Assembly (NCBI GenBank): GCA_000708835.1
Contig: DF237028.1
Span: 124,001 to 188,000, forward strand
DNA: 64,000 nt
From: Klebsormidium nitens
Lineage: Eukaryota; Plantae; Klebsormidiophyceae
Reading direction: 5' to 3'
Position numbers and translations under genes: made by a program. Shown one piece after another: positions 1 to 6,900 of this stretch (position 1 is the first letter of the stretch; every line of letters starts with the position of its first letter). Below the pieces are notes generated by a model. It saw only the letters and a program-made list of their open reading frames with translations, was not told the DNA's origin and did not search any database.

Positions 1-229
1 GTGCTTGAAGTGATGTACGTTCACACCCGCTTTACAGTCGTTGTCTGCTCGCACGGCCAAATTCTACGAACTTTGATCTGACGTGCTAGTGAGTGTTTCA
101 TCAATACTGCAGACAACATCGCTTTATTGGTGCCGCAGGCTGGAAGGCTGCTGGAAAGATGAGTTTTGCATGCGATTGTGCAGCAAGAGGTGTGGATTCC
201 TTGTAACCTGAAGTTGTCATGCGCGCAAA

Positions 230-480
230 CTGAAATAACATGTAGAGTGCTGATTCGATCTCATGCCAGGGGTCATATATGCACTTAATGTATACAGCTC
301 GATCCTTGACATCTAGGTGCGCAAATACTCATTGAACCAGGCAGCGCATGTGTCGTTGATCAATTGATCATATGTGTGCCAGTACATGTGACCCGGCTTC
401 CAAGGCTGGTACATGCAGTTGATCATTTTCTACTAGATCGTTCTTAACTAATCACACAATAAAGCACGACAAGTGCTCTG
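230..480. other. Palindrome-rich intergenic segment downstream of the first minus-strand gene
   Basis: By-eye count of about 26 self-complementary 4-mers in 241-420 (about 11 expected at 1/16 per position). Perfect 14-bp palindrome TGATCAATTGATCA at 357-370. Confidence 0.65.
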
Positions 481-539
481 TTGCCAACATCAAATGTAAG
501 AGCAAGTAAAAGTCCCTCAAGGACGGTGCCAAAGACACG

Positions 540-3384
540 TCAAGCTCTACGAAGATACAGAGCTTCATAAGTTCGCACTAGAGGTTTATGTACATACAAA
601 ATCCTGAAAGCAACCTGCATTTTCAGCATAGACTTGGACAAGATGGGAATCTCAGTAGGTCCTGGCTGTGAACGATATGAAAAGAAACATGCCAACGACT
701 CCGGCTTTGTATGTACAGTTTCTACAAGCAATCCGTTCCCTCTGATACCTTGATGCGATTTGTCGGAAGTTGGAAGATATACACAGGCGAGACCTAGCCA
801 TATTACACACTGCTTTTCTCCATGTTGTTGCTCCTCTCCGTCGTGTGAGCAATTTCGTCGATGGCCTGACTCACGTCCTCCTTCTTCCCAGTGAAGGTGC
901 GCGTTAAGGACTCCACTGTCGGCATCTTCAAGTTAGCAATCTTTTGCATCGTTGGAGTGTCCCGGATGGAAGGCCCGTCCTTCGTCATGTTGATGATGGT
1001 CCCAGGAGTGGCGATCAAGCCATTGACCGTATTGGTGCCCAGCTCCAGAGCACCACCGATAGGCTGCAAGGATCCATGGCCTTGCTGAGGGTTCATCATC
1101 AATAATCAAAGACTCCCAACCCTCAGCATCTTCGACTTGCACATGCTATGATAAGATCGTGCTCAGCTTCGGCAAACAGATTCAGCTACATACAGGCAAA
1201 TGAAGGGACCATTAGAAGAACGATCGGACTCATTGAGCCCCAGATATCGATTCGAAGTCGAGGGAATGGACTTACTTTGCAAAACGCTCCGGCGAGCCCC
1301 TTGGCAAAGCCCTTGGCGATGGCGACTCCAGCAATACCAGGGGAATCCCTTTGATGCGTCCTCGCCGCCTTCATTGGCTCTGTCTGCACAAGGACCAGGA
1401 GAGCGTTGTGATTCTTGAACATAAGACTTGCTTGTCAGGCCTTCCTGGGGGTAATTTGTGCTTGTACATGATGAATGTGGTCCGTGAAATGAGGGGTCAA
1501 AGACGGCCTTCGAGTGGCAGCTGCTCAAGTTCGCAACAAAGAACAGCTATAGACCGTGAAAGTATCAAAGAATCGGTACCAAAACTCCTTCCGTCAACAA
1601 AACAGCATAATGACTCCATTGACACCACAGCTTCATCAGAAACGGAGATTTCTTAAGAGAATACCAACTCAAAAGCAACTGAGTAAGCTCGAGATGAAGT
1701 CCGCTCAAGGGGTTTTCAACGATGTAGCGGAGTCACAATCGAAGTACTCACGACCAGCCCAGCTACCCCATCGTACACCCCGCTCCCAAGGCTCTTCATT
1801 CCATAGAAAAGGCCCTCCCCCACATGCACAGGCTTGTCGTGTGGCTCATCACGCAAGAAGGCCGGCTTCGCAAGCTCGATGCGACCTTCAGGCGTTGACG
1901 ACTGCACGAAATGATTGTGGCCAACGTCAGTGTCTCCAAAAGAATTTTCTCACCACGAAGGAGACTAGAGTAGATGCTTCTGCCCAGAAGACCTGAAACA
2001 AGGCATATATGTGGTCGATACTCCAGTTGCAGGCACCAGAATGCAATGAGAAGCTTTCTAAACAAGCACATGCTGCTTTGGCCTCACCAGAGGAGGACCA
2101 TAGCCCCGGTTCTCCTCCCCAAATAAGGCGTCTGGAGTCTTCCTGAGACCCGTCCCAAGCTGGTGCGTCAGGATGGAAATCCCTTCTGCCGGGCGCTGCA
2201 CGGCCTCCACAAGGCCCGAGCCCAAGCCTTTGAAAAAGCCAGCAGTCCCCCCATGCTTGGCACCTTCTTGTGGGTCATTCTGCAGGAGGAATTGAGGGAT
2301 CTCAGAACCATAAACAATGGAATCCGACGTCAGAAGGCTTGCTTCATACAATCTGTCTCAACAGGCAAACAACTCATTTTCACAGAACCCCAAGGTACAA
2401 TGAAGGCAAAAAATAAATACACCCTACAAGAAGGTAACCGTCCAGCCTCCAAATGCACCAGCTAGAAGCTTACCACAAGGTGTGAGAAACCATCGTACAC
2501 CTTGTTTGCAAAGCCACTGAAACCACCAACAACCGCCTCTCCCACATGCCGAGGCTCCTTAGGGCCTACGCAGAAAACCCAAATCGATTAGTATCAGAAG
2601 TGGAACCATGAACCAATATAGACTAGCTTCGTAGGTTAGCATGTAACTGAGCTCGAGAAGTTGACTCCAAGGTGCAACACAATTGAGCTCCCAGAATCCA
2701 GTACTGCTTCTGAACATCCACATGGATATTCAGCTGGCCTGATGGGACCCAGTGAATAGACTGTCTTGATTTTCTTCAGAAAGCATTGTAAATGCGAACC
2801 TACCAAATATTGATGTCCGCAGGTCGTCTAGATCACCTCTCAGATCGTCAAGGGCCCTCAACAGGTGCACTTGGTCGCCAGCGATAGGGACAAGCTCCGG
2901 CAAGGAGTCTTTGTCCAATCTCACAAGTACAGCACCCGATATTTCATTGGCGAGGAACTTCTCCTTGTACTGAGACAGTCCCTGGCTGTCCAGCCAATCT
3001 CCGACTTCCTGCAGGGGTAAGCCCTTGACTTTGATACCTTGTGCAACACATGGAGAGAGGGATAAAAACCTGTGGTCACCCTTTTTTGCTCCAGGATATA
3101 TTTGCTTTCAACACTTGTTCAAGTTCTATTCTCACATACACTTCTGATTCACCACAGAACCAAAACTGCAGGGTCTGTGCCAAAGGCTGCTCTGAGTTCT
3201 AAGCGGGAGTGCTGGCTACTCAAAGGTTGCAGTCAATTGTACCAGAGACTCGGCGTTGGAAAGCAATCAAAGACTGTATTCTTACGGCAAACTCAGGCCA
3301 GCTCACAAATGAAATCCACCTCACCTCACATGTCCACTCATTTGGATCTTCTGGTCGCAAAGTCATGCCACTTGTGCTCGCCAT
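540..3384 (-). CDS. SAM-domain protein with two VPS13/ATG2 C-terminal-like Gly-rich amphipathic repeats (about 355-375 aa)
   Basis: Exons 3384-3325, 3008-2804, 2565-2474, 2279-2088, 1901-1752, 1383-1276 and 1063-875 join in frame with GT-AG sites. A likely last exon is 665-540; without that splice the ORF stops at 803. The N-terminus WTCEEVGDWLDSQGLSQYKEKFLANEISGAVLVRLDKDSL..IAGDQVHLLRALDDL fits the SAM pattern. Repeats PRHVGEAVVGG..VYDGFSHLVNDPQEGAKHGGTAGFFKGLGSGLVEAVQRP and PVHVGEGLFYG..VYDGVAGLVTEP..KGFAKGLAGAFCKP resemble the VPS13/ATG2 C-terminal helices. Confidence 0.75.
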
Positions 3385-3963
3385 TCGCTGGCAGCACCGA
3401 ATTGAATGACGAAAGCAGTTCGTAACAGAGAAACGGCCCAGAAAAGGCGTGCCCAGCTTGAATGTTTTTCTCAAAGGCTCAACCCGTCATGAACCTCAGG
3501 AGACGCGCGGACCCTGCTGCACCAGACTCTGCTGAACTCGAGTGAACACTGCTTGAATCAGCATAGATCAGCATCTTCAGACTTCAAAGCAGAGTATGCA
3601 GTCTCCCACTGCCAGCCACCAATCAAGTTGCTCTCTGAGTCCACGTGGTTTAGAGTGGTAGCTACCGGCTTTCTCATTAGCCACAGAAGGTATGTACCTC
3701 TTAGGTACATGCGGTGCCGCTTTCATAACGGAGGATGGCATGCCAAGTGCAGTTTGTCGAGTCGAAGTCACAGCGAACTGCAAAGCCTGCTGGCAGTGCC
3801 AGTAATTGTCTGGAGGGGACATGCAGTCAGGGGATGTTGGAGCAGCCGAAGTGTGGTCGCGAGCGCCCATTGGTGGTAGCAATTTTCTGGGGCCCAGCTT
3901 GAGCTGCTATTATTGACCTCTGATTGCCTTTCTCTTGTGAGGGGTTATATAAAGAGCGGAATC

Positions 3964-6900
3964 ATGGGAAATACAGCCGGCGAAAGCATTGGCAAGCCGG
4001 AAGCGCATGCATATACAAAAGCTGAGCAGATGGACCAGGATGAGGCACCATCGCTTCCCTTCTTTGCTAGGAGCTGGCGTCTGGCAAGGAGTTTCACTGG
4101 GGGTGTCTCAAATATTGCGGGGATGGTCTGGAGAAGCGACAGGGACTTTGAGAGAGCTCTGGACAACCTGTCCAAGTAAGCTGAGCTGAGTTGTTGAATT
4201 CAAAACAACAAAATGCTGAGGTGCTGCCTGTTTGGATGCAGGATACCTCCAGTATCTCTGTAGGACCCCTTGAAGTCTTCTGTGAACCTTGTGGTGCTGC
4301 GGGCAGCACGCTGTGTAGTCTTACTAATTCGGGCTTTTCCCTGATTGGAGCACGTCTAGCGATCAGGCTTTGCTGTTTCTGAGGAGTCAATTTTGGGCAA
4401 ACCCTAATGCAGCAAACCCTAATGGTAGAGGCCCTGGGGCAGGCAAGAGGAAGAAAAGGACCATGGTGTCGAACACGACGCGCTTGCCGAATCAGCTTCT
4501 TTCCTGAGCACATCTATCTCCCCTCGCAGGTTTGAGGATGCCTTGAAAAACCGTATTCATAGACGTGGAAGCAACTGGCGGTGGTTTGCTCGCTCAATCA
4601 TGCTGTGGTCAGCTGCCTTGGAGGTAAGGAAAGGCAGCCCTTCTGTTGCAATATTGCAGAGCCAGGATGTTTTGACTGTGAAAATGTCGAGCAGGTCTCA
4701 ATTCACCATGTTGTGCGAAGTCGGTCAGGGGAGGTTTCAGAGGGCGTCCACATGTGCATGTATGTGTAGAAGCGGCCATGCATGCTTGGCAAGCCACAGT
4801 GGCTGCGTAGAACAAGGAGGTCTGTGTGATCGCCTCTGGCTTGGGGTAGGACATGTCTGACTATCTCATTGAGAAGCTGGACGCTAGTTGTTGCCTGAAA
4901 ATCCAATCTCAGGAACAGTTCTGGATGACAGGCAGCTGCCATCCGCTCACTGTGCCCCTTCCCTTTTTCCAGGTTGTTTTTCTAAGCTACGCCATTGTCA
5001 TGACGCACTCAGGGGGCCTGGAATGGCAGAGGCGTGCTTTGATAGTTTTGCCGGTCTTCCTCCTCCCAGCTTGTGCAACCCTGCTGTACAAAGTCCTCGC
5101 AAGGTACTACAGAATGAGTAAGCCCCACGCTTCTTGAGTTGTCAGTCCTGCTGTGGCATGCTTTGAGCAGGTGGAGGACTGCAAACTCATACTCAATCGG
5201 TACAACGTTCTGAAGCTGATCTTATGGACACAATAGGTGAGCTTGCTTTTGATCTCACCAAAAGTTGAATGTTGAATCAAGATGATCGATGTTAGCAGGC
5301 TCCAAGCAGACAGATCCTTCATCCTTCACTGCACCTTGATAACAGCTGGGTGATCAGAAGCGGCGTTTCTTGGAAGGAAGTGACTTGGCGCCCGGGATAC
5401 TGATGCAAAAGGCTTGCTGCAGGGGAGCGCCAGGACAAGCAGGCCCTAGCTGACGTCCAGCAGAAGATGAAGCGGAGACTAGACGAAGTGAAGGACAAGT
5501 CCAACTTCTATCGCACTCTGGAGGTCATCCAGGTGCGCATGCGTTTCCGCTTCGCGCACAGTCGGTGCAAACGAACCAGGGCTTGGATGCTAGAAAGGCG
5601 CCGCAGTTTGTTGTATTGGTACCTAGCTTATTACCTCGTGTGAGAGAGCCTTCTTATGCAACAGTTGGGTGAAGTGCTCTCGGCCAACCAAACCCTTTGG
5701 TTGATCCCAAAGATCTAATAACTTCTTTCGAGGACTTCTTGACTGATGTCTGTGCCTTCGATAGCAAAGGCTGAGCTTCATTTATAAGATTCTCAGTGGT
5801 GGTTATACCATGTCTGCCCGAAACTCAAAGCTTCCATAACGCCACTGAGACCCACCCTACGATTCCCTGCTTTTGCAGAAGTACGACAATGACCCTGTCG
5901 TCAAGGCCGCTGCCGCGACTGTGCTTGGGTCCAAACTTGGGTTGAAGACAGACCTACCGCCCGAAATACAAGCCCATCTTACGCCCACCAAATCCGCTAG
6001 CACCCCTGATCGCTCCCCGTCAAGCGGGCTCAGGAACCGACGATCGTCTGGGGCGCATCCCCCGAGCTCGCTTAACCCAGAGGTTAGCTCCCAGGGTGTC
6101 CCTAGGTCCGCGCAAGGAAGGGTGTCGCAGGAGGGGAACTCTCCTCGACCTAGTTACGGAGCCCCGGGCCCCGGGTTTGAAGGGTTTGGCCCGGCGACGG
6201 CAGGGAACTGGCAGCCGGGGCAGCATCAGACGGGGGGGGTGGTTGGGATGTTGGAAAGAGTCGCTCAGATGCTGGTCGGGGAGGACCCCACGCAGTGCTA
6301 CGCCCTCATCTGCGAGCGGTGCCGGCAGCACAACGGTGAGCGTGACCAAAGGCCCGCCTTCGACCGCTTTTTCTTGAGCGAACCTTGTTTTGGTTGCTCA
6401 AAGTGTCAATTGATCCCCTTAGTATTGACTCTTTTTGAGTATTCAGAAGCTCAATGATAAAGCAAAGGACTTTCGTTGATTCAAACTGCCGAGCTTAGTA
6501 CAGGTTCGTGACTTCTGGAGCCCGAGCGCCTGTTGATTCGTATTGTGCTCACTGTTTCCCGGAATTACTGCATCCACGATGTGCCCCAAAAAGAAAAAAC
6601 ACAAGACTGAGGCGCATAGGCACCGCGTTGCATGGGATACGAGCGTCAGCACGGTCGAATCTTGTTGTTTTTGAGAAGCTCGTACCCGCTGGGAGACAGT
6701 TCGCATACTGCAGCAGCTATCCGCTGAATGTCGCTCATAGCCTTTTTAAGTACGAAGCCACGAGTCTGAAGTGCATTTAGCCAGCGTTGCCTGAAGATGT
6801 CCACCTCTGACCTGACCCAACGATCTGTGTGTGAGCAGGCCTGGCCAAGAAGGAGGACATGGAGGTCCTGATGTACCACTGCAGATTCTGCTCCCACTTG

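Follow-up and report, generated by a model that had tools for sequence, protein, structure and literature searches.

A small protein of the alga Klebsormidium nitens joins a SAM domain to two ATG2_C-type units related to VPS13 and ATG2

The ATG2_C helices at the ends of VPS13 and ATG2 are central to current models of how these bridge-like lipid-transfer proteins find and deform acceptor membranes. The ATG_C region of about 150 amino acids (aa) consists of two repeats of about 75 aa, each an antiparallel pair of helices (Levine 2022, PMC7613979), and the C-terminal region of ATG2A has been described as targeting lipid droplets and autophagosomes (PMC7613979). The ATG2_C motif of VPS13A (residues 2866–3029) embeds in and deforms the bilayer, according to simulations and flotation assays (bioRxiv 10.64898/2026.01.07.698282), and that of VPS13C is needed for liposome binding, is sufficient for vesicles with packing defects and is mobile off the membrane (PMC13430412). 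These helices are hard to study, being located at the end of proteins of 1,900–3,800 residues (ATG2A, VPS13C) and invisible in the cryo-electron microscopy maps of VPS13A and VPS13C, and the isolated VPS13C fragment aggregates (PMC13430412). Only one case of ATG_C outside bridge proteins has been published, that of fungal sterol glucosyltransferases (Levine 2022, citing Grille 2010; PMC7613979). Here, we describe a minus-strand gene at positions 540–3384 of a 64,000-nucleotide (nt) stretch of the Klebsormidium nitens genome (GenBank assembly GCA_000708835.1, contig DF237028.1, positions 124,001–188,000; the window), which encodes a small protein comprising a SAM domain and two ATG2_C units. 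This combination is a new architecture of a known module.

The structure of the gene was determined from spliced contigs of four public runs from four studies, mapped on window positions 1–5000; because they are spliced, these contigs represent RNA. Seven exons are separated by six GT..AG introns, the first start codon of the long open reading frame (ORF) is ATG 3384, and the stop codon is at 805–803 on the minus strand. The encoded protein is 355 aa long (20+68+1+30+64+50+36+86), or 344 aa when an alternative in-frame donor is used. The exons, with the two repeats numbered R1 and R2, are the following:

Exon 1, ~3518..3325, minus strand: 5' untranslated region (UTR), ATG 3384 and the first 20 codons (MASTSG..EWTCE); joint 3008|3325 in four runs.
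Exon 2, 3008..2804, minus strand: SAM domain, 68 codons plus 1 base; joint 2565|2804 in four runs.
Exon 3, 2565..2474, minus strand: first helix of R1 (PKEPRHVGEAVVGGFSGFANKVYDGFSHLV), terminating at a phase-0 intron.
Exon 4, 2279..2088, minus strand: second helix of R1 (NDPQEGAKHGGTAGFFKGLGSGLVEAVQRPAEG..TPDALFG) and start of the linker, from RNA joints.
Exon 5, 1901..1752, minus strand: conserved linker (IELAKPAFLRDE) and first helix of R2 (HVGEGLFYGMKSLGSGVYDGVAGLV), terminating at the symmetrical phase-0 intron.
Exon 6, 1383..1276, minus strand: loop and second helix of R2 (TEPMKAA..GIAGVAIAKGFAKGLAGAFCK), terminating at an R2-specific phase-0 intron.
Exon 7, 1063..~500 (483..1063), minus strand: end of R2 (PIGGALELGTNTVNGLIATP), conserved motif DGPSIRDTPTMQKIANLKMP, C-terminal helix, stop codon 805–803 and 3' UTR; joint 1063|1276 in four runs, with contigs terminating at 483–526.

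A single contig spans exons 3 to 7, another joins exon 2 to exon 1, and exons 3 and 2 are linked by a separate joint (2565|2804, four of four runs) with 28 letters on its short side in each run. The SAM domain and the repeats are therefore carried on one mRNA, as the initial annotation of this locus had asked to have confirmed, and orthologous transcripts that hold both parts in a single ORF back the same reading.

Window exons were searched singly, and an orthologue (P0091), with which they are collinear in alignment, represented the whole protein in folding. The translation of exon 2 matched Pfam SAM_1 (1.6e-12, 48.1 bits, cut-off 23) and SAM_2 (8e-11, 42.3 bits, cut-off 20.5), in both cases above the gathering score, and the SAM region of the AlphaFold2 model of P0091 was predicted with a local distance difference test score (pLDDT) above 90. 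Both its score and its five-helix fold place this region among SAM domains. The closest solved SAMs by sequence were those of SHANK2/3 and ANKS1A, and the best Foldseek matches of the model in the PDB were the SAMs of Shank2/3, SAMD1, DGK-delta, PHC3 and Scm, with target-normalised template modelling (TM) scores of 0.8–0.9. The SAMs of Shank2/3, SAMD1, DGK-delta, Polyhomeotic/PHC3 and Scm form head-to-tail polymers.

The C-terminal part of the protein consists of two Gly-rich repeats of about 80 aa, of which the first-half exons are 43% identical to each other (E = 5e-7), and the whole repeats of the Chara orthologue are 41% identical (E = 4e-18). The layout first read from the sequence, a SAM domain followed by two such repeats, is thus upheld by the SAM_1 match, the alignment of R1 with R2 and the spliced RNA. 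Exon 4 alone matched residues 3539–3586 of human VPS13C and a C-terminal VPS13A construct (7e-6, phmmer against PDB sequences), with exons 5, 6 and 7 singly giving nothing meaningful in the same search. A HMMER search run exhaustively against 1.84 billion representatives gave 90 matches to exon 4 at E ≤ 1e-3. Among them are full-length fungal VPS13s, where the match immediately precedes the Pfam VPS13_C (PH) domain, in a part of the protein without a Pfam model. A unit profile built from 42 units of diverse proteins found two tandem units in each of human VPS13A (2.2e-21), VPS13C (6e-21) and ATG2A (5.2e-8), and its match on VPS13A falls within the ATG2_C motif. Both repeats resemble the last ATG2_C unit of VPS13 more than the region in its entirety, the scores being 60–70 bits with that unit and about 12 bits with the one upstream. 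The likeness to the C-termini of VPS13 and ATG2 that had been proposed at the outset therefore holds on the strength of exon 4 and the unit profile.

No Pfam model, ATG_C (PF09333) included, matched the repeat exons or the orthologue repeats, even at E ≤ 1 to 10. However, the Pfam copy used also leaves the ATG2_C region of true VPS13s unmatched, so that the failure of PF09333 says little. The profile check suggested for this protein accordingly came out in two parts, with SAM_1 and SAM_2 recognised by Pfam and the VPS13/ATG2 similarity recovered through the unit profile rather than through ATG_C. An ESM Atlas feature search (0.78–0.83) named ATG2 and VPS13_C fragments, and is taken as a lead only. 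The unit profile also showed a weak, non-significant similarity to the lipid-binding repeat region of alpha-synuclein (E 0.02–0.9), which probably reflects the common composition of Gly/Ala/Lys-rich amphipathic helices.

The model of P0091 has a mean pLDDT of 73 and a predicted TM score (pTM) of 0.44. It contains two helical hairpins, with helices 108–141/143–183 in R1 and 209–242/247–297 in R2 (pLDDT 70–88), separated by a linker predicted to be disordered (pLDDT 41–55) and followed by short C-terminal helices. With their two antiparallel helix pairs, these hairpins agree with the published description of ATG_C (Levine 2022, PMC7613979). When the model was compared with the PDB using Foldseek, the SAM part alone was matched and the hairpins had no match. 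Across the 42 units, which contain 19.5% Gly, the median maximum hydrophobic moment was 0.53, with z above 1 in all except one (41/42). Exon 3 of the window gene likewise had a moment of 0.53, a value reached by 1 of 500 shuffles, and R1 is clearly amphipathic (shuffle fractions of 0.002 and 0.04), whereas R2 is only weakly so.

Intron positions link the repeats to each other and to VPS13. The phase-0 introns after ..FSHLV (2474|2279) and after ..VAGLV (1752|1383) fall in the same alignment column, so that the RNA joints bear out the shared intron position noted in the initial annotation; the alignment around the intron sites is unambiguous. This intron, which lies between ..h-L-V and x-x-P, interrupts R1 and R2 alike in the window gene, in Chara and in Closterium. 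Two chytrid VPS13 genes, from Synchytrium endobioticum and Obelidium mucronatum, carry it as well, in their last ATG2_C unit. A second intron, in phase 2 within the Gly codon of G-h-x-G, before (A/V)-h-x-K-P, is found in R1 and R2 of Chara and Closterium and in the two chytrid genes, but the window gene has lost it from each repeat. A third, in phase 0 after ..CK and before P (the intron that ends exon 6), is specific to R2 and common to all three algae. In Chara and Closterium, the second and third introns leave a 13-nt microexon in R2 (Chara L001:36472-36484, x+VICK; Closterium L002:9302-9314, x+AICK), and the Chara microexon is flanked by introns of ~11 kb and ~6 kb.

Because two intron positions and phases are common to these genes and to chytrid VPS13 genes, the unit appears to have been copied as DNA from a VPS13-type gene, and the far higher scores that R1 and R2 reach with the last VPS13 unit, compared with the unit before it, agree with that source. 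The simplest reading is that the last unit of a VPS13-type gene was copied and duplicated as genomic DNA, introns included. For this comparison, VPS13 genes came from fungi only among the 120 matches listed, with no plant or algal VPS13 gene, and the B-box gene of Tieghemostelium and the DnaJ gene of Diacronema are intronless and gave no intron information. A tree of 54 units placed R1 and R2 in separate, strongly supported streptophyte clades, never as sisters within one protein, and left the deeper branching undecided. It follows that the repeats were duplicated before Klebsormidium, Chara and Zygnematophyceae separated. The internal duplication originally deduced from the shared intron thus stands insofar as the repeats were duplicated together with their introns; it did not occur within Klebsormidium, and the intron is older than the gene, since chytrid VPS13 genes have it too.

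Collinear orthologues with SAM and two units were found in Chara braunii (CBR_g40196), Mesotaenium endlicherianum, three Closterium strains and several further transcriptomes, and a divergent environmental clade also has SAM plus repeats; one of its members, P0104, is annotated as a single ORF without introns and lies among compact genes. The orthologues of Chara, Mesotaenium and Closterium are collinear with the window protein along their entire length. No SAM-plus-repeat orthologue was found beyond streptophyte algae and this one environmental clade, and none surfaced from land plants in a search that was not exhaustive and leaves their absence unproven. Orthologues have in common the linker motif IExAKPxFL and the C-terminal motif DGPSIxDTPTxQ+hANL+hP, and the RPxxPxEWTCE motif of exon 1 is also kept in the alignment. 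The linker between the hairpins varies in length and is greatly expanded in Closterium. The annotated Chara protein (P0006), however, lacks the SAM domain and starts with 46 residues that bear no relation to the orthologues. The 5 kb fetched upstream at the Chara locus (L001) yielded no SAM-like exon, so that either the start is mis-annotated, in a gene whose introns are very long, or the domain was truly lost. In Closterium sp. Yama58-4 (L002:7374-8998), the end of the exon encoding SAAVPAAAVMRGLAKGLAG is repeated ~15 times in the following intron with a 109-nt period, forming a tandem array of exon-end copies.

The unit was also found in other architectures. B-box proteins with two units occur in Amoebozoa (the dictyostelid Tieghemostelium, and Ceratiomyxa), a GT28/UGT sterol-glucosyltransferase with a B-box and two units in Ancoracysta twista, with a PX-bearing relative, and in Lankesteria and Diacronema a single unit precedes DnaJ plus DnaJ-X; arrays of two to five units without other domains were also detected. 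Among non-SAM proteins with two units, mostly of the B-box and UGT types, unit 1 preferred the R1 model and unit 2 the R2 model in 13 of 14. The matches of exon 4 included 12 DnaJ proteins (P0046, P0052, P0026, P0054, P0063 and P0067 among them), 10 of which also have DnaJ-X; those inspected, from Lankesteria, Diacronema and others, have one ATG2_C-type unit N-terminal to the J domain and could be membrane-targeted Hsp70 co-chaperones.

On the other side of the start codon, a plus-strand gene begins at ATG 3964, 580 bp from ATG 3384, with splicing on the plus strand in the RNA contigs. A Lunapark gene had initially been placed at this distance; the spliced gene is indeed there, and its identity as Lunapark is that of a candidate, based on a Lunapark zinc ribbon at 5873–6343 on the same strand, downstream of ATG 3964 (PF10058, 1.5e-9). 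Contigs of the plus-strand gene start at 3760–3790 and those of the SAM gene terminate at 3518, with an adapter-tailed loose end at 3517 that marks the probable 5' end, so the probable transcript starts lie ~250 bp apart. The two genes have in common one feature:

Divergent promoter region, 3519..3963, no strand: common to the SAM gene and the plus-strand Lunapark-side gene.

Lunapark-like sequence was absent from the flanks examined at the fetched Chara and Closterium loci; the head-to-head layout is therefore not conserved within those flanks. Given an mRNA start at ~3518 and an opposite-strand gene 580 bp away, the protein is SAM plus two ATG2_C units and nothing else, in line with the earlier claim that no space is left for chorein or RBG domains. 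A Chorein_N or RBG beta-groove channel was likewise not found in the ORF of 355 codons: Pfam detects SAM alone in the window protein, and the model of P0091 is all-helical. The protein is thus outside the VPS13/ATG2 bridge-like lipid-transfer family.

Some further features of the transcripts were observed. The alternative in-frame donor of exon 2, at 2837, is used in three of the four runs (joint 2565|2837); it drops 11 aa (GDLDDLRTSIF) and gives the junction ..DDLR-G-PKEPRH that is found in the alignment of all orthologues. The extra segment retained with donor 2804 resembles a small duplication of the preceding LDDLR, and contigs of this long form are deeper in all four runs, the short form being missing from one of them. 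The 5' UTR holds a three-codon upstream ORF (3490–3479, minus strand, ATG ACG GGT TGA). RNA joints skip an in-frame candidate exon at 1992..1954 and replace two acceptors read by eye, setting the start of the SAM exon at 3008 rather than 3037 and that of the last exon at 1063 rather than 1084. Contigs of low depth (~1–12% of the spliced depth) cross introns at window positions 1354–1781, 2538–2832 and 2981–3282 and are probably unspliced pre-mRNA. One unstranded contig (run X5) is continuous across both first exons of the divergent pair (3324–4175), and low-depth contigs span the promoter gap in other runs.

By homology with ATG2_C, we lean, with modest confidence, towards the window protein acting on lipid droplets or packing-defect membranes as a sensor or adaptor that oligomerises. 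It would be a soluble peripheral-membrane protein, and it has no lipid-transfer groove. Binding to lipid droplets or to packing-defect membranes is known for the motif of VPS13C and VPS13A (PMC13430412; bioRxiv 10.64898/2026.01.07.698282). The C-terminal two thirds of the protein consist of two ATG2_C-type units, each a predicted antiparallel hairpin of Gly-rich amphipathic helices, and these hairpins would bind lipid-droplet monolayers and packing-defect bilayers as ATG2_C does in VPS13/ATG2. The N-terminal SAM domain would most likely self-associate or pair with another SAM protein, several weak membrane-binding hairpins could then act jointly, and through avidity the protein would serve as a sensor, coat or adaptor of lipid droplets or of membranes that are stressed or curved. 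The attachment of homologous units to very different partners (B-box, glucosyltransferase and DnaJ) fits a device that targets membranes or lipid droplets autonomously. The data show the transcript with its exons, the SAM domain, the homology of the repeats to ATG2_C, the hairpins predicted in an orthologue, the derivation of the unit from a VPS13-type gene and its reuse elsewhere; that this protein binds membranes or droplets, that it oligomerises through SAM and what it does in the cell are only inferred.

Several points weigh against this proposal. Polymerisation cannot be read from SAM sequence similarity, and R2 of the window protein is weakly amphipathic, with moments of 0.40 and 0.33 that are not above those of shuffled sequences. 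The family assignment of the unit, for which there is no matching Pfam model, depends on our own profile, and ATG2_C helices are invisible in solved VPS13 structures, so that no structural comparison is possible. The proposal also leaves unexplained the conserved C-terminal motif DGPSIxDTPTxQ+hANL, which could carry the real function, and no experimental study of the window protein or of any orthologue was found in the searchable literature.

That same motif, being linear and conserved, suggests a protein partner, and it is among the observations that would suit hairpins acting mainly as a protein-binding surface, with the protein regulating the docking of VPS13 or ATG2 or competing with it. 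It would do so at the receptor or membrane sites that the bridges themselves use, or on their C-terminal cap, its SAM domain recruiting further factors, and a unit copied from a VPS13-type gene and nearest to the last VPS13 unit (60–70 bits against ~12 bits upstream) would be suited to this. We nevertheless regard it as unlikely, as the published accounts present the ATG2_C helices as lipid-inserting, mobile and disordered off the membrane, and not as a protein interface (PMC13430412; bioRxiv 10.64898/2026.01.07.698282), and the unit is also found on enzymes and chaperones, for which a competing role would be hard to understand. Less likely again is that the hairpins close into a soluble four-helix bundle that carries or buffers lipid or a hydrophobic ligand, like apolipoproteins or perilipins, with no membrane sensing. 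The long paired helices modelled with moderate confidence in P0091 would allow for it, as would the 19.5% Gly, since small residues could permit helix-helix packing, and the weak, non-significant profile likeness to alpha-synuclein (E ~0.02) points the same way. However, the hairpins are joined by a linker of predicted disorder, variable in length and expanded in Closterium, and with a pTM of just 0.44 a fixed packing of one hairpin on the other is unsupported.

That the gene is an artefact, whether a VPS13 fragment or pseudogene, a mis-joined gene model or a compositional similarity of Gly-rich sequence, is refuted by the results and retains hardly any credibility. The repeats lack a Pfam match and no annotated protein of the window's genome surfaced in protein searches, as an artefact would lead one to expect, but the RNA contigs are fully spliced, open and abundant in four studies, collinear orthologues exist in at least four streptophyte algal lineages, profile E-values reach 1e-21, and intron positions and phases are identical. 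Three outcomes had been named beforehand as refuting the initial annotation, namely repeats that do not match VPS13/ATG2 profiles, SAM and repeats on split transcripts, and an already described family, and none of these was observed.

No paper linking SAM with ATG2_C was found in the searchable literature, and the orthologues in databases are labelled 'hypothetical' or 'unnamed'; the architecture, which the initial annotation did not recognise, has no description in that literature. A survey of VPS13 in Archaeplastida took sequences of at least 2400 aa, and the window gene would therefore fall outside it; more generally, because no model in the Pfam copy used matches the unit, many such proteins are labelled 'hypothetical'. 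Small natural proteins made of little beyond ATG2_C, in SAM, B-box, glucosyltransferase and DnaJ versions, offer a tractable system for the stand-alone module, and the common introns make this a rare and clean example of DNA-level copying of a domain out of a giant gene. A broader and more speculative scenario, which we hold tentatively and think rather less probable than a simple sensor or adaptor, is that streptophyte algae may possess a dedicated, bridge-independent protein in which a polymerising SAM domain arrays VPS13-derived hairpins as a coat or sensor of droplets or of damaged or curved membranes, and which may gate VPS13/ATG2 docking. The ~80-aa unit would then be an unrecognised mobile eukaryotic targeting domain, one that spread out of a VPS13 gene, introns included, and was put to new use in SAM, B-box, sterol-glucosyltransferase and J-domain proteins.

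Among known systems, the polymer-forming SAMs of SHANK2/3, SAMD1, DGK-delta, PHC3 and Scm are the best sequence and structure matches of the SAM part of the window protein, but at just 25–30% identity this likeness is a lead for polymerisation only. The B-box protein DLAC_08349 of Tieghemostelium lacteum, which has two units, is in the same size class and also has a small N-terminal interaction domain; it differs in carrying a B-box zinc finger in place of SAM and in being encoded by an intronless gene, and the 54-unit tree leaves undecided whether the two-unit cassettes of B-box proteins and of the window protein are orthologous. Fungal sterol glucosyltransferases with an ATG_C-like region share with the window protein the occurrence of ATG_C outside bridge proteins, but there the partner is an enzyme, whereas the window protein has SAM and no catalytic part. 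In the C-terminal region of ATG2A, the unit profile found two tandem units (1742–1815 and 1844–1917, E = 5e-8), which are more divergent (21 and 12 bits) and, unlike those of the window protein, are located on an RBG bridge. The closest counterpart of R1 and R2 is the last unit before the C-terminal PH domain of VPS13A/C, with which they have in common the ~80-aa consensus HxGEGxxxGxxxLGxGxxDGxTGLVxxPxxGAxxxGxxGFxKGxGxGxxGxxxKPxxGxxDLxxxxxEGLxNTP; in VPS13, however, the unit terminates an RBG bridge of 3000–4000 aa and is flanked by VAB and PH domains, whereas in the window protein two units follow a SAM domain.

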